This document shows, one piece after another, positions 3,434 through 42,300 of a DNA stretch of 64,000 bases. Made by a program: the position numbers and the translations under genes. The stretch covers positions 6,138,001 to 6,202,000 of the forward strand of contig OY740783.1 in NCBI GenBank assembly GCA_963514005.1, read 5' to 3'. Numbering within the stretch: position 1 is the stretch's first letter; each line of letters opens with the position of its first letter. The stretch is from Raja brachyura. Its lineage: Eukaryota. The notes under the pieces are model-generated. The model was not told the origin of the DNA. It searched no databases and saw nothing but the letters and a program-made list of their open reading frames with translations.

Positions 3434-4135
3434 ATAACCATATAACCATATAACAATTACAGCACGGAAACAGGCCTTCTCGGCCCTTCCAGTCCGTGCC
3501 GACCATTTATTTTCCCCTAGTCCCATCTACCTGCACTCAGACCATACCCCTTCATTCCCTTCCCGTCCATATACCTATCCACTTTACTTTTAAATGTTAA
3601 AATCGATCCTGCCTCCACCACTTCTGCTGGAAGATCATTCCACACAGCCACCACTCTCTGAGTAAAGAAGTTCCCCCTCATGTTACCCCTAAACTTCTGT
3701 CCCTTAATTCTCATGTCATGCCCTCTTGTTTGAATCTTCCCTACCCTCAATGGGAAAAGCTTATCCACGTCAACTCTGTCTATCCCTTTCATCATTTTAA
3801 AGACCTCAATCAAGTCCCCCCTTAACCTTCTGCGCTCCAAAGAATAAAGACCTAACTTGTTCAACCTTTCTCTGTAACTTAGTTGCTGGAACCCAGGCAA
3901 CATTCTAATAAATCTCCTATGTACTCTCTCTATTTTGTTGACATCCTTCCTATAATTAGGCGACCAAAATTGTACACCATACTCCAAAATTGGTCTCACC
4001 AATGCCTTGTACAATTTTAACATTACTTCCCTACTCCTGTATTCAATGCTCTCATTTATAAAGGCCAGCACACCAAAAGCTTTCTTTACCACCCTATCTA
4101 CATGCGATTCCACCTTCAGGGAACTATGCACATAC
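3434..4135 (-). mobile_element. 5'-truncated CR1 (TATGGTTA-tail family)
   Basis: ORF 3517-4173 is the CR1 RT C-terminus (LVRPILEYGVQFWSP, LGLYSLERRRLRGDLIE); microsatellite tail present; nearly the same as 62428-63130. Confidence 0.93.
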
Positions 4136-5078: not shown

Positions 5079-5413
5079 AAAAACTATGTTAGGATTTAAG
5101 CAAACATACTTATACACGTCTACCCAGTTACAGGCAAAGGGAAGGGCAATTCAGATCATTTAACCAGTAGTTTTCCACGCGTTCCAAAAGACTAAGTGTA
5201 ACCGTAGATTAATTCATGCTCCATATTTTACACCAGAAAAAATGTTGCCTATTAAATAGTTTAAAGCTTCCGGTGGCGCTATGCTGGAGTGAGGAGGCAC
5301 GCCAGCCAGCTCCGTGAAAAAAACGGGGAAAAAAACGGGAGATAAAGCCCTGCCTGCTGCCTGCCGTTTCTGCACGAACTGTTGTGAGTGACGTTATCAG
5401 GCACACGACCGTA

Positions 5414-6460
5414 ATGGCAACACAGCGCAGACCACCCGCGGATAAACCCAAACTCAGATATGGAAGACCGAAAACGGCAGAAGAACAAGGCCTGACTGAA
5501 GCACCGGGCTCAGGTAGGACATCCTCCCAGGAATATGTGTCTAAAAAGTTAAATAAAAAATCGGAGATGGAAGAACTTAAAACTTTTTTTACACAAGAAA
5601 TAATAGAGTTAAAATCGGAATTTGCAAAAAAAGAAGATATAGAAAAAATGAAGGAGGAGATGAAAAAGTTAAAGTTTGAAATTAATGCCTCTACTCGGGA
5701 ACTATCTGATAATTTGCGAAAGGAAATTGCAGAAATATTAGCAGAACAAGCTGCAATTGCTGCTGAAGAGATGGACGCTAAAATAAAAAGCAAGCTGGAA
5801 AAGGAGCTGGAACCTATCGAAACTGTACTTAATGAGCAGTCGTCGACCATAAAGGACCTTGAGGAGATAGCCGAAACAAATACTCAGTCTATGAAAGCAC
5901 TCCTGAAAGAAAATCAACGCTTATCTGATCAACTGGGCAAAATAACTGAAAAATGTATCGAGTTGGAAGGGCACCAGCGAAGGCAGAACTTGAGAATCGC
6001 AGGTATTCGAGAAGGGAGAGAATCGAATCAAGATACCCGAGAGTTTACTGCAAATTTACTGCAAAAGGTTTTATCTCTGGATCAGAAACCTTTATTAGCC
6101 CGAGCACACAGAGTAATGAGGCGTTATACAAGACCAGACGCCCCCCCAAGACAAATGATAGTGAAACTCCAGTATGATCATGTTTTGGAGGAGATGATGA
6201 ACAAAATAGTAAGAAGCAGAAACCTCACATTCGAAGGAGACTCTATCAGCATTTATCGAGACTACCCAGCAGAGGTTTCTAAGAAGCGGAATGCGTTCAA
6301 GGAGACCAAAAGAATTCTGAGAGAAGTGAACAACGTGAAGTACACTCTGAGATATCCAGCCACTCTCAGAGTCACCCACAACCAGGAAGAACACTACTTC
6401 AAAAACCCAGCAGAAGCACTGGACTTTGCCAAGAGGATCAAGAGTCAAGAGGAAGACTGA
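5414..6460 (+). CDS. L1 ORF1p (coiled coil, RRM and CTD), open reading frame intact
   Basis: LEGHQRRQNLRIAGIRE, RAHR, PRQMIVKL, IYRDYPAEV, LRYPATLRV motifs; first ATG at 5414. Confidence 0.9.
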   Translation: MATQRRPPADKPKLRYGRPKTAEEQGLTEAPGSGRTSSQEYVSKKLNKKSEMEELKTFFTQEIIELKSEFAKKEDIEKMKEEMKKLKFEINASTRELSDNLRKEIAEILAEQAAIAAEEMDAKIKSKLEKELEPIETVLNEQSSTIKDLEEIAETNTQSMKALLKENQRLSDQLGKITEKCIELEGHQRRQNLRIAGIREGRESNQDTREFTANLLQKVLSLDQKPLLARAHRVMRRYTRPDAPPRQMIVKLQYDHVLEEMMNKIVRSRNLTFEGDSISIYRDYPAEVSKKRNAFKETKRILREVNNVKYTLRYPATLRVTHNQEEHYFKNPAEALDFAKRIKSQEED

Positions 6461-7085
6461 ATGAAAGTTTCTAAGACGAACCTCATTGATAAATAAATCG
6501 TACCCTCACGACTGGAATGGGCTATGGACTTGTGGTACTTAAAGAAGATGGAGAAGGAGGCGGCTTGGAGACTCGGATGGGAGATATGGATTGGACATTC
6601 GTTTATGGATATTAATAATTAGAGTAATAACATTACTAATATTAACTAACAAATACTAAAACATTCGGCGTAGTATTATTACTAATTTACAGCGCGGTAC
6701 TAATACTAATTAAAGTTGATAATCTTCAATCAGGGATTCATATTTACTCATGGCTGATTTAAATAGAATTAGATAATTATTAAGTATAATCATATAGAAT
6801 ATAAAGCTTGATTTTATTTACATCCCATGGTAATTTTTTATTTTTCTCCCCCTTTTTTTATTTTTTAAATTTTTTTTTACTTTTTTATTTTTCCTCCCTT
6901 CTTTTCATTACATTTTATGATATATCTTTAATTTGTTTCAAGTACAGATATTATTATATACTTGAATGATAGACACCGTATACATCAGATTTTATTACTC
7001 CCAGTTAAATATTTTTATGAATTAATAATATTGAGGAGCTGGAAAGATACAAACAACGTCTACGGATGTCCTTAGATTATTAGCC

Positions 7086-7349
7086 ATGTTAGAATGGCTA
7101 ACACTCACTGCACCAATCTTAGATGTAGTTTTTTCTTTCTTTGAGCACTCTTTTAACCTCTTAATCTATCTTTTTTTTAATATCACTTTCTATTATTATT
7201 ATTTTACATTTGAATGGAGTTGTAAATCAAAGCAAAGGAGATATATGCGTGAGCATTACTTAAGGGTCTTGAAATTCATCTATTTGAAGTTCGGGTGTAA
7301 GGCCGGGTATGTCGAGCTGAACCATTTGCTCTATTACAGACCCCCTTAG
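7086..7349 (+). CDS. Candidate small third ORF in the L1 inter-ORF spacer (see findings)
   Basis: 87-aa ORF whose last 46 aa are 29/46 identical, without indels, to the same position in L1 copy B (41139-41279). Confidence 0.5.
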   Translation: MLEWLTLTAPILDVVFSFFEHSFNLLIYLFFNITFYYYYFTFEWSCKSKQRRYMREHYLRVLKFIYLKFGCKAGYVELNHLLYYRPP

Positions 7350-7353
7350 ACAA

Positions 7354-10300
7354 ATGATGCAAGACTTAAAAACGAATATGGGGAATGGAGGAATAACGTT
7401 TTGCAGCTGGAACGTAAAAGGTATTAATGAACCAATTAAGAGAGGTAAAGTATTAGCACACCTAAAAGCACTCAAAACAGATGTGGCATTCATCCAAGAA
7501 ACACATTTAAAAAAAGACACAGAGCATAGATTAAAAGCCAAATGGATTGACAAAGTGTATCATTCTTCTTTTACAAACAAATCAAGAAGCGTAGCAATAT
7601 TAATCCGTAAAGGTACCTTATTTAAACATACTTCAACTATAACAGATAAGGAGGGCAGATATGTTATCATAACAGGAGAATTATATACACAAAAAATGAT
7701 TTTTGTTAACATTTACGGCCCAAATTATGACAGTCCGTCGTTTTTTAGGAAAATACTAAATACTATCCCAGAACTAGTACAATACAATTTAATAATTGGA
7801 GGAGATCTAAATTGTACATTAGATCCTTACTTAGACAGATCATCAAGACAACGGAAAACTAAATCGCTTTCTAGCGATCTAATAAATGCATATATAGATT
7901 CGAGCAACATTATGGATGTTTGGAGAATGGAAAACCCAACGGGACGAGAAAAATTGTTTTACTCATCAGTACATAAAACATACTCAAGAATAGACTTCTT
8001 TCTAGTAGACTAAAAACTTATTCCACTCACTTATAATTCAAAATACCACAATATTATAATTTCAGATCATGCACCATTATCTTTTATGATTAAAATAACT
8101 GGAAAAATGGGGAAGCAGGGACAATGGAGACTCAACCCACAAATTTTAAAGGACAAAACAACTCAAGAATACATTAGAAAACAAATTGAGATCTTCTTTG
8201 AAACAAATGACAAACCAGAAATATCCCCGTTACTACTATGGGAAACTTTTAAAGCATATACACGTGGAATTATGATATCTTCTCAAGCATTCTTTAACAA
8301 AGAGAATCGGAGGATACAGCAGGCATTGGAAAAAGAGATTAAGCAAATAGATATAGAAAACGCTGCTAATCCAACCATGATTAAACATAATAAAATCTCT
8401 GCATTGAAATATAAATTAAATAAAATACAATCAGACCAAGTTGTAAAACTTTATCAATATACAAAACAAATACAATTTGAATTTGGAGATAAACCACAAA
8501 AATTATTTTCTGGTCAATTAAGAAAATTGGAGGGAGAAAAAATAATCCATAGGGTTAAATCAGATACAGGGGAATTATTAACACAAACCAAAGACATTAA
8601 CGAGAGATTTCTGCAATATTATAAAAAATTATATTCAGTCAAAACGATAGAAAATCATATAGGAATAGAAACATTTCTAAAAAATTGTAATTTAAAGGAA
8701 TTAGATATGGAAGACAGAGAATCATTAAACGCTGAAATAACAATTAAAGAAATCGAAGAATCTATTAGGTCATTAAAAAATGGTAAAGCACCAGGACCGG
8801 ATGGAATTGGTTCGGAATTTTATAAAATATTTGATGATTTAATGATACCACGGTTAAAGACACTTTATGAACACATTTATACACAACAGAAATTGCCTGG
8901 AACATTAAATGAATCTATTATTACATTAATACCTAAAGTAGATAAAGATTTGGAGGACCCTGATCATATAAAGCCATAGCTCTTTTAAACACTGATCAAA
9001 AAATATTAACTAAAATATTAGCACGAAGATTAAATATGGTGATCAACAAAATAATACACCCAGGCCAGACTGGATTTATACCAAAACGATACTCTTCATA
9101 TAACCTGAGACGATTATTTAACATTATATACTCGAAAAGAAATACTAGTAAAGACCTAGCAATTATCTCATTAGATGCAGAGAAAGCTTTTGATCAGGTT
9201 GAATGGTCTTATTTATTCTCGGTTTTGGAATCCTTCCAGCTAGGAGAAAAGTTTATAACGTGGGTCAAATTATTATACACCAATCAGACAGCTAGAATAC
9301 AAACAAATCAAATGTTATCAAGTAAATGTAACTTATTCAGAGGCTGTAGACAAGGTTGTCCGCTATCACCACTACTCTCTGCGTTAGCAATAGAACCATT
9401 AGCACAGCGTGTGAGACTATACCCTGAAATATATGGGTATGAAACCAAAGAAACGGAAAATAAAATTTCTTTATACGCAGATGATGTATTACTCTATATT
9501 ACAAAGCCTGAAATTAGTATACCTACCCTGCTAGATTTAATAACTCAATTTGATCTACTCTCAGGATATAGAATTAATTGGAATAAAAGTGAACTTATGT
9601 CAATAATGGAAATAACTCACACATATTACAACGATTCCTTTTACGATAGCAAATGAAAAAATTAAATATCTTGGAATTTATGTAACAAAAAGACATGACT
9701 CTTTATTTAAATCTAATTTCCCACCTTTATTGAATAAATTACTTAAGAATATTCTATATTGGAAAACATTACCTATCTCAATGTTAGGTAAAATAAATGC
9801 GATAAAAATGATCTTTCTCACGCAAGTATTATATTTATTTCAAATGATCCCGATATATCTTCCCAAAAATTTTTTCAAAAAGGTGGATTCTATAATTACA
9901 AATTTTATTTGGGATTATAAGAGCCATAGAATAAATAAGAAACATCTATGTAAAGCAAAAATAAGTGGAGGTTTAGCGTTGCCTAATTTTATGTTTTACT
10001 ATGGGGCAGTTTATATTAAAAATATGAATTTTTGGTTGGAAGAATTAGATATACAGCCGAATTGGTTAAAATTGGAAAAGGAAGACTGCTTACCTTTTGA
10101 AATTAGCTCGATTATATTTGCTAATACCAAATTACATAAAAAAACTTATAGAGGAAACCCAATAATAGAAAATGGGATACGTATTTGGAAACAATTAAAA
10201 AAATTTTTAAAATTGGAATGTATACCACTGGATCTTCATATTGCAAACAATATCACTTTTAAACCCTCTAGGATGGATAAAGGTTTTTCACAATGGAAAA

Positions 10301-12260: not shown

Positions 12261-12701
12261 AGAAACATAGAAACATAGAAAATAGGTGCAGGAGTCGGCC
12301 ATTCGGCCCTTCGAGCCTGCACCGCCATTCAATATGATCATCCAACTCAGTATCCTGTACCTGCCTCTCCATACCCCCTGAACCCTCTAGCCACAAGGGC
12401 CACATCTAACTCCCTCAACTGATCTCAACTACCTTCTGTGGCGGAGAATTCCAGAGACTCACCATTCTCTGTGTGAAAAATGTTTTTCTCATCTTGGTCC
12501 TAAAAGACTTCCCCCTTATCCTTAGACTGTGACCCCTTGTCCTGGACTTCCCCAACATCGGGAACAATCTTCCTGCATCTCGCCTGTCCAACCCCTTAAG
12601 AATTTTGTAAGTTTCTATAAGATCCCCCCTCAATCTTCTAAATTCTAGCGAGTGCAAGCCGAGTCTATCCAGTCTTTCTTCATATGAAAGTCCTGACGTC
12701 C
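12261..12701 (-). mobile_element. 5'-truncated CR1 in the TM1-TM2 intron
   Basis: ORF 12415-12657 is the CR1 C-terminus; (TTTCTATG)n tail; TSD CATATT at 12255-12260 and 12702-12707. Confidence 0.92.
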
Positions 12702-33500: not shown

Positions 33501-36420
33501 AGCTAGATGCTGGAAGATGGTTCCCGATGTTGGGGGAGTCCAGAACAAGGGTCACAGTCTAAGGATAAGGGGGAATTCCTTTAGGACCGAAATGAGGAAA
33601 ACGTTCTTTAGAAACATAGAAACATAGAAAATAGGTCCAGGAGTAGGCCATTCGGCCCTTCGAGCCTGCACCGCCATTCAATGTGATCATGGCTGATCAT
33701 CCAACTCAGTATTCCGTACCTGCCTTCTCTCCATACCCCCTGATCCCTTTAGCCACAAGTGCCACATCTAACGCCCTCTTAAATATAGCCAATGAACTGG
33801 CCTCAACTACCTTCTGTGGCAGAGAATTCCAGAGACTCACGACTCTCTGTGTAAAGAATGTTTTCCTCATTTCGGTCCTAAAGGAATTCCCCCTTATCCT
33901 TAGACTGTGACCCCTTGTTCTGGACTCCCCCAACATCGGGAACAATCTTCCAGCATCTAGCTTGTCCAACCCCTTAAGAATTTTGTAAGTTTCTATAAGA
34001 TCCCCCCTCAATCTTCTAAATTCCAGCGAGTACAAGCCGAGTCTATCCAATCTTTCCTCATATGAAATTCCTGACATCCCAGGAATCAGTCTGGTGAATC
34101 TTCTCTGTACCCCCTCTATGGCAAGGATGTCTTTCCTCAGATTTGGAGACCAAAACTGTACGCAATACTCCAGGTGTGGCCTCACCAAGACCCTGTACAA
34201 CTGCAGTAGAACCTCCCTGCTCCTATACTCAAATCCTTTCGCTATGAATGCTAACATACCATTTGCTTTCTTCACTGCCTGCTGCACCTGCATGCCTACT
34301 TTCAATGACTGGTGTACCATGACACCCAGGTCTCGTTGCATCTCCCCCTTTCCTAATCTGCCACCATTCAGATAATAGTCTACCCTCATGTTTTTGCCAC
34401 CAAAGTGGATAACCTCACATTTATCCACATTATACTGCATCTGCCATGCATCTGCCCATTCACTCAGCCTATCCAAATCACCCTGCAGCCTCCAAGCATT
34501 CTCCTCACACCTAACTATACCCCCCAGCTTGGTATCATCTGCAAATTTGGAGATGTTGCATTGAATTCCCTCGTCCAAATCATTAATATATATTGTAAAT
34601 AGCTGGGGTCCCAGCACTGAGCCTTGTGGCACCCCACTAGTCACTGCCTGCCATTCTGAAAAGGACCCATTTACACCTACCCTTTGCCTCCTGTCTGCTA
34701 GCCAGTTCTCTATCCACATCAATACGGAACCCCCAATACCGTGTGTTTTAAGTTTGTATGCTAATCTCTTATGCGGGACCTTGTCGAAAGCCTTCTGAAA
34801 GTCTAGATACAACACACCCACTGGTTCTCCCTTGTCCACTCTACTAGTTACATCCTCGAAAAATTCTATCAGATTTGTCAGACATGATTTACCTTTCGTA
34901 AATCCATGCTGACTTTGTCCAATGATTTCATCATTTTCCAAATGCGCTGCTATCCCATCTTTAATAACTGACTCTAGCAGTTTCCCCACTACCGATGTTA
35001 GACTAACTGGTCTGTAATTCCCCGCTTTCTCTCTCCCTCCTTTTTTAAAAAGTGGGGTTACATTAGCTACCCTCCAATCCTCAGGAACTACTCCAGAATC
35101 TAAGGAATTTTGAAAAATTATCACTAATGCATCCACTATTTCTGTGGCTACCTCCTTGAGTACTCTGGGATGCAGACTATCTGGCCCTGGGGATTTATCG
35201 GCCTTCAATCCGTTCAATTTACCCAACACCACCTCCCGGCTAACCTGGATTTCACTCAGTTCCTCCATCTTATTTGACCCCCGTTCCACTGCTATTTCCG
35301 GCAGATTATTTATGTCTTCCTTAGTGAAGACAGAACCAAAGTAGTTATTCAATTGGTCTGCCATGTCCTTGTTCCCCATGATCAATTCACCTGTTTCTGA
35401 CTGCAAGGGACCAACATTTGTTTTAACTAGTCTCTTTCTCTTCACATATCTATAAAAACTTTTGCAGTCAGTTTTTATGTTCCCTGCCAGTTTCCTTTCA
35501 TAATCTATTTTCCCTTTCCTAATTAAGCCCTTTGTCCTCCTCTGCTGCATTCTGAATTTCTCCCAGTCCTCCGGTAGGCTGCATTTTCTGGCAAATTTGT
35601 ATGCCTCATCTTTTGTTTTTATACTATCCCTGATTTCCCTTGTTATCCATGGATGCACCACCTTCCCTGATTTATTCTTTTGCCAAACTGGTATGAACAA
35701 CTTTTGTACTTCATCCATGCAGTCTTTAAATACCTTCCATTGCACATCCACTGTCAACCCTTTAAGAATCACCTGCCAGTCTATCTTGGCCAATTCACAT
35801 CTCATACCTTCAAAGTTACCTTTGTTCAAGTTCAGAACCCTTGTTTCTGACTTAATTTTGTCACTCTCCATCCTAATGAAGAACTCAACCATATTATGGT
35901 CACTCTTGCCCAAGGGGCCACGCACAACAAGACTGCTAACTAACCCTTCCTCATTACTCAATACCCAGTCTAGAATAGCCTGCTCTCTCGTTGGTTCCTC
36001 CACATGTTGGTTGAGAAAACTATCCCGCATACATTCCAGGAAATCCTCTTCCTCAGCACCCCTGCCAATTTGATTCACCCAATCTACATGCAGATTGAAG
36101 TCACCCATTATAACCGTGTTACCCTTGTTGCACGCATTTCTAATTTCCTGTTTGATGCCATCCCTAACTCCAATACTACTGTTAGTTACACAGAGAGTGG
36201 TGAGTCTCTGGAATTCTCTGCCACAGAAGGTAGTTGAGGCCAGTTCATTGGCTATATTTAAGAGGGCGTTAGATGTAGCACTTGTGGCTAAAGGGATCAG
36301 GGGGTATGGAGAGAAGGCAGGTACGGGATACTGAGTTGGATGATCAGCCATGATCACATTGAATGGCGGTGCAGGCTCGAAGGGCCGAATGGCCTACTCC
36401 TGCACCTATTTTCTATGTTT
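30558..36420 (+). mobile_element. Middle CR1: 149-bp 5' tandem monomers, 917-aa ORF2 (30809-33562), no ORF1; its 3' end is displaced to 36186-36420
   Basis: LNARSI, ITETW, MGDFN, SDH endonuclease; LDFQKAFD, GVPQGSVLGP, FADD RT; 1-nt deletion near 33550. Confidence 0.92.
33609..36185 (-). mobile_element. Inner CR1, 5'-truncated and almost identical to its host
   Basis: ORF 33706-36185 open; (TTTCTATG)n tail; TTA repeated at both junctions. Confidence 0.92.
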
Positions 36421-38079
36421 CTATGAAAGCTAACATACCATTCGCTTTCTTCATTGCATGCTGTACCTGCATGCCTACTTTCAATGACTGGTGTACCATG
36501 ACACCCAGGTCGGGCTGCATCTCCCCTTTTCCTAATCGGCCTCCATTTAGATAATAGTCTGTTTTCCTATTTTTGCCACCAAAGTGGATAACCTCACATT
36601 TATCCACATTATACTGCATCTGCCAAACATTTGCCCACTCACCCAGCCTATCCAAGTCACCTTGCAGTCTCCTAGCATCTTCCTCACAGCTAACACTGCC
36701 CCCCAGCTTAGTGTCATCCACAAACTTGGAGATATTGCCTTCAATTCCCTCATCCAGATCATTAATGTATATTGTAAATAGCTGGGGTCCCAGCACTGAG
36801 CCTTGCGGTACCCCACTAGTCACTGCCTGCCATTGTGAAAACGACCCGTTTACTCCTTCTCTTTGCTTCCTGTTTGCCAGCCAGTTCTCTATCCACATCA
36901 AAACTGAACCCCCAATGCCATATGCTTTAAGTTTATATACTAATCTCTTATGTGGGACCTTGTCGAAAGCCTTCTGGAAGTCCAGATACACCACTTCCAC
37001 TGGTTCTCCCCTATCCACGCTATTAGTTACATCCTCGAAAAATTCCACAAGATTTGTCAGACATGATTTACCTTTCGTAAATCCATGCTGACTTTGTCCA
37101 ATGATTTCATCATTTTCCAAATGCGCTGCTATCCCATCTTTAATAACTGACTCTAGCAGTTTCCCCACTACCGATGTTAGACTAACTGGTCTGTAATTCC
37201 CCGTTTTCTCTCTCCACCCCCCCCCCCCCTTCTTAAAAAGAGGGGTTACATTTGCTACCCGCCAATCCTCAGGAACTACTCCAGAATCTAAAGAGTTTTG
37301 AAAGATTGTCACTAATGCATCCACTATTTCCGGAGCTACTTCCTTAAGTAGTCTGGGATGCAGCCTATCTGGCCCTGGGGATTTATCGGCCTTTAATCCA
37401 TTCAATTTACCCAACACCACTTCCTGACTAACCTGGATTTCACTTACCTTTGGACTGTACAGACTGTTGTCGAGATTTGTAAAGGTTTTTTGAGCAGGAG
37501 CATCCAAATATAAAGTGCTGGAGTAACTCAGCAGGTCAGGCAGCATCTGTGGAGAACATGGACAGGTGACGTTTCACAGAGTGCTGGAGTAACTCAGTGG
37601 GTCACGTTTGATGCCAAACGTGAAGAGTACAACATTGGGCAGCTCAGTCGGGGAGTTCACTGTTTGTGTGAAGTATTGTCTTTGATATAGCTCGGATGTT
37701 GCTGTGCCAGTTTGATTATGAAAATAGTCAATGTATTCTTCTGCCCTGTAGGATTCACTACTGCAGACAGTACATGTGACTAACCTTGAAACATTGGGCC
37801 TAGGGTTATTTTTCCAGGCCCTTAATAACTGTTGAAGATTAATTTAACTTTTTATTTTCAGATAGACTAAGTTACATACAAAACAAACCAATGTCACGTT
37901 AGTGATTTGAAGTCTGATGACATCCTCCTTCACACCTAGGGAGGAAGAGATTCCAATTGTAATTGAAGGTCATGAGAAACAGGATCAGCCATTGAAAGGA
38001 TTGTAGTGAACCTTACAGGGTAGCAGAATACATTGACTACTGTAATTCCCTGCCACAGCAACATGCCAGCTTTGTTGAA

Positions 38080-39327: not shown

Positions 39328-42300
39328 GGACTTCCGTCGGTGCTTTGGAGTAAGGCAGACTCGCGCCGTTTAGCTCCACAAAAAATTGATTACAAACGGC
39401 GGGGGCAAAAATCGAACTTACCTGCAGTACAACGGTACCGGTTGCTTGCAGTAAGCGTGTGACGTCATCAAGCGTGCGACAACACCGGCGGTATGTCTAC
39501 TCTACATACACACACACCAGGTTGAGAAAACCCGGTAAGAAGTAGGCCCGACTCAGGTTTAACATCGTCCCAAGAAGAGATCTCAAAGAAGAAGAAAAAC
39601 AGATGTGGAAGAATTAAGAAGTTTCCTCGCACAAGAAATCTCAAATATAATGGAAGAATTGAAAAAACTTAAACAGAACTTCAAGGAAGAATTGAATTTT
39701 TTTTTAAAAGAAATTAAAGAAGAAATTCAAGGAGATGTCGTAGCCTCTGTACATGAAGTACTGGAATCCTGGAAGTTAAACATGGAAGAAAATCTTAATC
39801 AAAAGATTGAAGAGGTAAATGTTAAATTGAATTTGATGGAATCCGCATTTAATTCAAAGTTGGACCCCATTTCCCAGGCACTAGAGCAACAACATAACAC
39901 TGTAATTGAATTAGAGGAAATTGCTGAAACAAGCTGTAAAACTACAAGAAAGCTTCTCTCCGAGAACAAGCATTTATCAGACATTGCATAAAATAACTGA
40001 AAAATGTATTGACTTGGAGGGACGTCAGAGACGCCAGAATCTAAGAATTATGGGCGTTTGGGAAGGCAGAGAGGGGAACCGTGACCCCCGTGAATTTGCT
40101 GCAGATCTATTGAAGAAAGTTTTAAATCGGATCAAGCACCTTTACTTGCTTGTGTACGTACAGCAATGAGACGCCGTCCAGGGGCGGACGCCCCCCCAAG
40201 ACAACAGATAGTGAAGGTGCAATATGACCATGTTTTGGATGGTATGATGAAGAAAATCGTTCGCAGCAGAAATCTCGAATTTGGATCGGTATATTTCGAG
40301 ATTACCCTGCGGAGGTCGCCAAGAAAAGAGCATTGTTTACAGACACAAGAAGAATACTTAAGAACATAAAAAAACCTGAGATATGGACTGATGTACCCCG
40401 CAACATTGAGAATCACCTACGACAAGAAGGAATATTTCTTCTCCAAGCACACACAGGCCCTTGAATTTGCAAAGAACATCGAGAGCGAGAGTGAGACTGA
40501 GGATTGAATAACATTCAACACTCACCTGACGATACCGGATATTGTTACCCCACAGAGAAGAAATTGAACTTTAAATTGCTATACTTAAGGACTGTCTAGA
40601 ATTTAGAATGAGAATTGAGTAGTTATCTTGTTATTGTTATATAATATTTTATATTTTAGTACTAATTATTACTAATTACTACTAATCATGATTACTAATT
40701 ATTATTAATTATTGTTAACTGGATCAAATTAGAATTAGCTAAAAGGATGAATTATAAGTAATGTGTGATTCAGGCAATTTATTAATAAAAATGTTGGAGG
40801 TTTACTCCGTGGTACTTTTGACTAATCGTTGACTAATATTTTTGCTATACGAGACTAATATTTTACTTTGAGACTAATTATTATATTCCACTAGTGGAAT
40901 ATAACCATTGTTTTCCATCCCCCATGTAATGTTTTTATTGAAATTGAAGATTTCCTTTTAAGGAAAGTACGGAGCTAGTAATATTTTTTTTACCAAAAGA
41001 AGCCCTTAGATGTCTAGCCACATTAGGGTGGCTATCACTAACTGCACTAACTATAGATGTAGTTTTTTTTCTTTCTTTTACACTTTACTAATATAACACT
41101 CTTACTTTTTCTATTTTATATTATATTATAATTTTTATTTTGAATGGAATTATAAGTTTTATTTAAGGAGATATGTCCGAGAAGAAAATCTACGAGATCT
41201 AAAATTAATCTATCTGAAGTTCGGGTGTAAGGTAGGGTTTAATGTGCTGAACCATCTGCTCAATCATATACCACCTTAATCATGATGCAAGATGTAAATG
41301 TGAAAACTGTGGGTGAAGGAATTGCATTCTGTAGTTGGAATGTTAAGGGAATTAATGAACCCATCAAGAGAGGTAAAGTATTAGCTCATTTAAAATTGCT
41401 TAAAACGGATATATTTCCCCAGGAAACTCATCTTAAAAAGCACAACACAGATTGAAAGCAAAATAGATTGCTCAAACGCGTCACTCTTAATTCACACATA
41501 AATCTAGAGGGGTTGCAATATTAATCCGTAAATGTATACCTTTTAAACATATATCAACTATAGAAGATATTGACGGCAAATATATTGTAGTAGTAGGCGA
41601 GTTATACTAAAAAAAAGTGACTCTCCTTAACGTATATGGACCAAATTTTGATAGCCCATTGTTTTTCAAGAGAATATTCAATACTATCCCGGAATGCACA
41701 CAAAATAATTTAATAATTGGTGGAGACTTAAATTGTACACTAGATTCTTATTTAGACAGATCATCAACTCAAAGAAATTTAAAATCTCAGTCAAGTGAAT
41801 TTTTAAACTCATATATTAATACTACCAATATCAAGGATGCCTGGGGAATTGAAAATCCATCTGGACGAGAATATTCATTTTATTCACCGGTGCATAAAAC
41901 ATATTCAAGGATAGACTATTTCTTAGTAGACTCTAAACTTATTCCATTCACCTACAACTCGCAATATCATAACATTATAATCTCGGACCATGCTCCAATA
42001 ACATTTATGATTAAACTAAACGGAATGGACAAGAAACAGACACAATGGAGACTTAATCCTCAAATTGTAAATGTAAAGGTATGTTATGAATATCTTGTAA
42101 AACAGATTAATATGTTTTTCGAGGCCAATGACCATCCTGGAACCTCTGCCTCCCTTCTTTGGGAAACATTTAAAGTTTTACTTGAGGAGCATTAATCTCC
42201 ATTAAAATGGAAATAAGGCAATTAGACATAGAAAATGCAGTAGCACCTTCTTTGGCAAAACACAATAAAATTGCAGCACTGAAATATAAGTTAAATAAAA

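Follow-up and report, generated by a model that had tools for sequence, protein, structure and literature searches.

Two diverged L1 retrotransposons of the skate Raja brachyura share a small reading frame just before the reverse-transcriptase gene, ORF2. Its last 46 codons evolve like coding sequence, and a third family found in a public protein database conserves the peptide. These L1s therefore probably carry a third, undescribed ORF, whose translation is inferred from sequence alone. Both copies lie on the + strand of the analysed window, a 64,000-nt stretch of contig OY740783.1 (assembly GCA_963514005.1, positions 6,138,001 to 6,202,000), and both are decayed. Copy A has an open 358-codon ORF1 (5384-6460) and a broken ORF2 (7354 to about 11200), while copy B has broken ORF1 and ORF2, with its ORF2 ATG at 41282.

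The assignment to L1 is solid. ORF2 pieces matched the endonuclease (Exo_endo_phos, E=7e-9) and reverse transcriptase (RVT_1, E=3e-28) families, and their best solved relatives were human L1 ORF2p structures (E=1.5e-35). ORF1 of copy A matched human (2ykp, E=1.1e-6) and mouse (2ldy, E=2.6e-5) L1 ORF1p. Its closest homologues, at 44-57% identity, were proteins P0001, P0002 and P0004 from Rhinoraja longicauda, Leucoraja erinacea and Amblyraja radiata. These are annotated in RefSeq as "uncharacterized protein LOC...", which means that retrotransposon genes were called as host genes. The two copies belong to different families, as they are 72% identical across ORF2 and their synonymous sites are nearly saturated. 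The layout is bicistronic. The spacer of copy A is 893 nt long, with a GC content of 0.28 and a T-rich simple tract within 6800-6900 (6834-6894 was skipped as a repeat in read alignment), matching the T-rich short repeats described for fish L1 spacers (PMC5381506).

Coding-type constraint on the last 46 codons before ORF2

We first re-examined the original prediction, and everything it described in the sequence was found to be present. Positions 7209-7349 of copy A and 41139-41279 of copy B align without indels as 46 codons plus a stop, with 71.6% DNA identity and 29 of 46 identical residues. All of the listed synonymous pairs were present, including two double-synonymous codons (AGG/CGA and TTG/CTA). 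The stops are TAG in A and TAA in B, lying 4 nt and 2 nt, respectively, before the ORF2 ATG. ORF2 begins with a doubled ATGATG in both families (7354-7359 and 41282-41287), although one variant contig and the P0007 copy (see below) appear to have a single ATG. One correction was needed, as the alignable region does not consist of two islands. By blastn, it runs continuously from 7070/41004 into ORF2 at 72% identity, whereas the AT/T-rich part of the spacer (6461-7064; GC 0.28), and 6461-7069 as a whole, gave no alignment between A and B.

We next tested whether the block (7209-7346, followed by the stop) evolves as coding sequence, using ORF2 of the same two copies as an internal benchmark. 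In all 11 ungapped ORF2 segments of 90 nt or more, the true frame gave pS 0.43-0.73, pN 0.12-0.20 and pN/pS 0.17-0.42, whereas wrong frames gave pN/pS 0.56-2.4. The block gave pS 0.66, pN 0.19, pN/pS 0.29 and 63% residue identity in the predicted frame, and could not be distinguished from ORF2. Its other two forward frames gave pN/pS values of 0.87 and 1.17, and none of its five other frames, including the three antisense frames, showed an excess of synonymous changes. When the same 39 substitutions were redistributed over sites with the same base, 18 or more synonymous changes occurred in 0.045% of trials (P=4.5e-4), an open frame in B in 4% (P=0.04), and both in 0.005% (P=5e-5, or about 3e-4 after correcting for six frames). 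By shuffling, the probability that the copy B block would be open was 0.011.

RNA structure and an N-terminal extension of ORF2 had been named in advance as alternatives that could undermine the coding interpretation. The region around the stop and the ORF2 AUG was not unusually structured in either copy (z -0.8 and -0.2), and its predicted folds differed between the copies, so RNA structure does not account for the block. An extension of ORF2 is close to excluded, because ORF2 lies in the +1 frame relative to the block in A but in the +2 frame in B and in a variant contig.

A third family and the extent of the frame

A profile of only the 46 residues was searched against 1.84 billion representative proteins and returned a single hit, P0007, a 127-aa protein from Logan contigs (E=3.8e-6), which has one cluster mate, P0008. 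P0007 shares 22 of the 46 residues with copy A (48% identity, counted by eye), including FEW, RRY, KFIYL.FG and YRPP. It also contains the upstream block (EVFRILATLVWLSLTTLIVDVV) in the same frame, 23 residues before the downstream block. The layout is the same in copy A, where the T-rich linker (7134-7208; 56% T) is 25 codons long, open in frame and not conserved in sequence. In the P0007 copy, a Gln replaces the stop and the frame ends 7 codons later. In addition, a 30-nt loose contig end from a further diverged copy reads RYIRARYLK, where A has RYMREHYLR and B has RYVREENLR, without indels.

The peptide is basic (pI about 10) and ends in Pro-Pro in all three families. Pro-Pro is directly followed by the stop in A (7341-7349, CCC CCT TAG) and B (CCA CCT TAA), while P0007 has RPP followed by Gln. 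A second loose contig end, at 7348, carries TAA, and in this variant the stop lies 5 nt before the ORF2 AUG.

In copy A, the frame is open for 104 codons (7035-7346; with its TAG, 7035-7349, the widest extent of the candidate ORF), against 8-10 stops in each of the other five frames (P=4e-4 by dinucleotide shuffles). In copy B, the upstream and downstream blocks lie in different frames, and each frame is closed by a stop in the linker. Continuity with the upstream hydrophobic segment is thus seen in two of three families. No start codon is conserved: the ATG at 7086 of A is ACA in B, as the original prediction had cautioned, and Thr in P0007, and the in-block ATG at 7245 is GTC in B. No other ATG is conserved.

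Contigs from sequencing runs of four organisms showed that copy A belongs to a high-copy family. Among the 40 best-supported of 340 variant sites, six positions within 7065-7349 differed from most contigs (7067, 7114, 7171, 7257, 7303 and 7337). Three of these make the peptide identical to B at that residue, one is synonymous, and none creates a stop. The indels listed in the ORF were a T-run length change after 7128 (about 5-10% of depth) and one 3-nt loss in the TAT repeat. A minority of contigs carry an 8-nt insertion (GAGCCACA or GAACCATA) at 7035, right at the upstream end of the open frame, which would change which upstream frame joins the ORF in those subfamilies. At 80% likeness, the two conserved blocks collected two to four times the contig depth of the rest of the spacer, which fits conservation across more families. 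Runs from 11 organisms each held 35-50% of the sampled 31-mers of 6000-8000. Three of the four aligned runs had about 100-180 contigs at 99% identity or more, and the fourth had 6, indicating that the family is either shared by several species nearly unchanged or was active very recently.

Other searches for relatives gave nothing. A word search with the 87-residue ORF found no candidate, and neither Pfam nor the ESM Atlas gave a family or fold relative; a weak MWFE hit was below its cut-off and lay on the hydrophobic stretch. The AlphaFold model was all-helical but of low confidence (pLDDT 55). Scans of metagenome, prokaryote-genome and viral contigs with peptide patterns and with an 18-mer identical in both families returned only chance 18-20-mers without flanking similarity.

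Two hairpins in the upstream block

The upstream block (7065-7133 in A, 40999-41067 in B) aligns with 14 of 23 identical residues but shows no coding signature between the two copies. Its pN/pS was 0.83, and its pS was only 0.25, far below the 0.6-0.7 of real coding sequence in these copies; its silent sites are therefore constrained. Folded separately, each copy gave the same two hairpins in its minimum-energy structure, at 7080-7101 and 7107-7129 in A and at 41015-41034 and 41041-41063 in B (z -2.15 and -2.03). Hairpin 1 (TTAGCCAT / ATGGCTAA) has a 6-nt loop in A, and its closing pair is U:A in A and C:G in B. Hairpin 2 (ACTGCA.. / ..TGTAGT) has invariant stems and a variable loop, and the majority T at 7114 adds the same three pairs that B has. 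All other differences fall outside the stems (about 7e-4 by our hypergeometric estimate, although the stems were found on these same sequences). The copy A ATG at 7086 lies in the stem of hairpin 1 and its T is the compensated base, so it is not a conserved start. These data suggest that an RNA element overlaps or precedes the ORF.

Possible roles of the ORF and rival explanations

Taken together, the interpretation in the original prediction was only partly supported. Its core, that the frame has been under protein-level purifying selection, holds. However, its proposal of a small, possibly membrane-associated protein rests only on one hydrophobic stretch that coincides with the two hairpins, and its alternative, a translated relay that delivers ribosomes to ORF2, remains an inference. 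Our preferred but tentative explanation is that the ORF, at the 3' end of the long spacer of these cartilaginous-fish elements, acts in cis. In this view, a ribosome that has translated it would terminate slowly on the Pro-Pro-stop next to the ORF2 AUG. This would either hand the 40S subunit to ORF2 by termination-coupled reinitiation or throttle access to it, keeping ORF2p output low and tied to translation of the small ORF. The hairpins, 80-130 nt upstream of the block, might help ribosomes enter internally. What the analysis itself establishes is the coding-type constraint on 46 codons, the frame kept in three families, the Pro-Pro ending, the position of the stop in three variants and the conserved hairpins; translation, the start site, stalling and any effect on ORF2 are inferred. 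Scanning from ORF1 is implausible, as the spacer holds 19 (A) and 12 (B) AUGs. On the other hand, the comparison rests on two decayed DNA copies, one relative known only as protein and one snippet, and conservation along all 46 residues plus a hydrophobic N-terminal segment would suit a trans-acting protein equally well.

Such a trans-acting product is the main rival, although we consider it less likely, and the two are not exclusive. It would be a small protein with one hydrophobic, membrane-type helix and a basic tail that is needed for or modulates retrotransposition, for example through RNP localisation or host antagonism, and the closeness of its stop to ORF2 would only reflect compact gene packing. 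It draws on the same coding evidence, conservation over 46 residues exceeds what an exit tunnel holds, and the AlphaFold model is all-helical. The upstream block also translates to the most hydrophobic 19-residue window in A (Kyte-Doolittle 1.74) and in P0007 (2.27), and the tail has a pI of 9.6-10.3. However, the upstream block lacks protein-level constraint between A and B, the model is of low confidence, no family or fold relative was found, the hydrophobic linker is simply T-rich DNA and is not conserved, and this view does not explain why the stop stays within 2-5 nt of the ORF2 AUG while the frame offset changes. It is unlikely that the whole 285-nt region is a non-coding RNA element, such as an IRES or a protein-binding platform, with the open frame and synonymous excess as by-products. 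The nucleotide-level constraint and hairpins of the upstream block, the lack of a conserved start codon and the identical 18-mer would fit this. IRES-prediction programs also placed IRES-like regions within 10 bp of the ORF2 start in other vertebrate L1 spacers (PMC5381506). However, the substitution pattern of the downstream block is frame-specific and identical to that of ORF2, double-synonymous Arg and Leu swaps are hard to obtain without translation, and P0007 keeps the peptide and keeps both blocks in frame. Moreover, the single synonymous change across the eight codons spanning the 18-mer was not significantly fewer than expected (by our estimate, about 2.9 expected, P about 0.2).

Chance or ascertainment is very unlikely. 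The frame was chosen after inspection of only two DNA sequences, and P0007 is in the database only because a gene caller found it open. Nevertheless, the joint simulation argues against chance, P0007 came from a blind search with only the downstream block yet extends in frame through the upstream block, and contig depth is raised over both blocks. The alignable region is continuous with ORF2, which could suggest an N-terminal extension of ORF2p reached by read-through or frameshifting, or a C-terminal part of ORF1p. This is close to excluded by the stops in A, B and the variant contig, the shifting frame offset, the conserved ORF2 ATG, and the stops in all frames within the 0.6 kb after ORF1. 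A spacer intron fusing ORF1 to the block was rejected by reasoning, as no convincing donor lies before the ORF1 stop and a retrotransposon would lose an efficiently spliced intron.

Several known systems offer precedents. Pro-Pro-stop is the key determinant of the hCMV UL4 (gp48) uORF2 arrest peptide, which stalls the terminating ribosome and, as in other conserved-peptide uORFs, is conserved in sequence just ahead of the ORF it controls (PMC4605324). The L1 ORF shares the purifying selection on the peptide and the Pro-Pro ending, but it is 46-104 or more codons long rather than 22, has no conserved AUG, is preceded by 12-19 AUGs and is internal to a bicistronic RNA 0.6 kb after ORF1, not in a scanned, capped 5' leader. 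Stop-start coupling (UAAUG) drives ORF2 translation in the non-LTR element SART1, with nearby RNA structure implicated (PMC3894237); related cases are the TURBS of calicivirus and influenza B and the unconventional ORF2 translation of human L1. In those cases, as here, the upstream stop lies within a few nucleotides of the downstream AUG, but the upstream ORF is ORF1 itself or a full-length viral gene, whereas here a separate small ORF would do the job and the stop and start do not overlap. TURBS motif 1 (UGGGA) is complementary to 18S rRNA helix 26; no TGGGA was found in 7035-7360 or 40970-41290.

Boissinot and Sookdeo (2016) described long, AT-rich, T-repeat spacers as ancestral in vertebrate L1 and predicted cripavirus-like IRES regions at the same position, but reported no shared structure and no ORF (PMC5381506). 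Here, the last 140 nt behave as coding sequence, and an Rfam scan of 6440-7420 at E<=1 returned only two sub-threshold, unrelated hits and no cripavirus IRES. Primate L1 ORF0 and the mammalian antisense L1 ORFs are also extra small ORFs (PMC5203782), but they are antisense, lie in the 5'UTR or opposite ORFs and are lineage-specific, whereas this ORF is on the sense strand between ORF1 and ORF2 and is shared by diverged families. Two broad L1 surveys mention only the antisense ORF0-type extra ORFs (PMC5381506, PMC5203782), Ivancevic et al. list only ORF0 and antisense ORFs as extra L1 ORFs, and our literature searches found no sense-strand inter-ORF gene in L1.

How ORF2 of L1 and most other non-LTR elements is translated is still an open question, especially behind long, AUG-rich spacers (PMC3894237). 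A conserved translated ORF abutting the ORF2 start would give this question a concrete, testable element, and would add a third gene to the L1 coding repertoire and a possible new eukaryotic arrest peptide. A more speculative and rather unlikely possibility is that L1 lineages keeping the ancestral long spacer (fish, and perhaps amphibians and reptiles) are really tricistronic. The conserved-peptide ORF would then be entered internally with the help of the two hairpins, possibly at a non-AUG codon, and would end in a Pro-Pro-stop arrest site abutting the ORF2 AUG; this would be the long-sought device that delivers and rations ribosomes to ORF2.

Elsewhere in the window, a short repeat of about 240 nt, 83% identical, lies in inverted orientation near both L1 copies (12266-12474 on the + strand versus 36188-36425 on the - strand; also 3611-3665 versus 36186-36240). 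It is probably an unrelated interspersed element.
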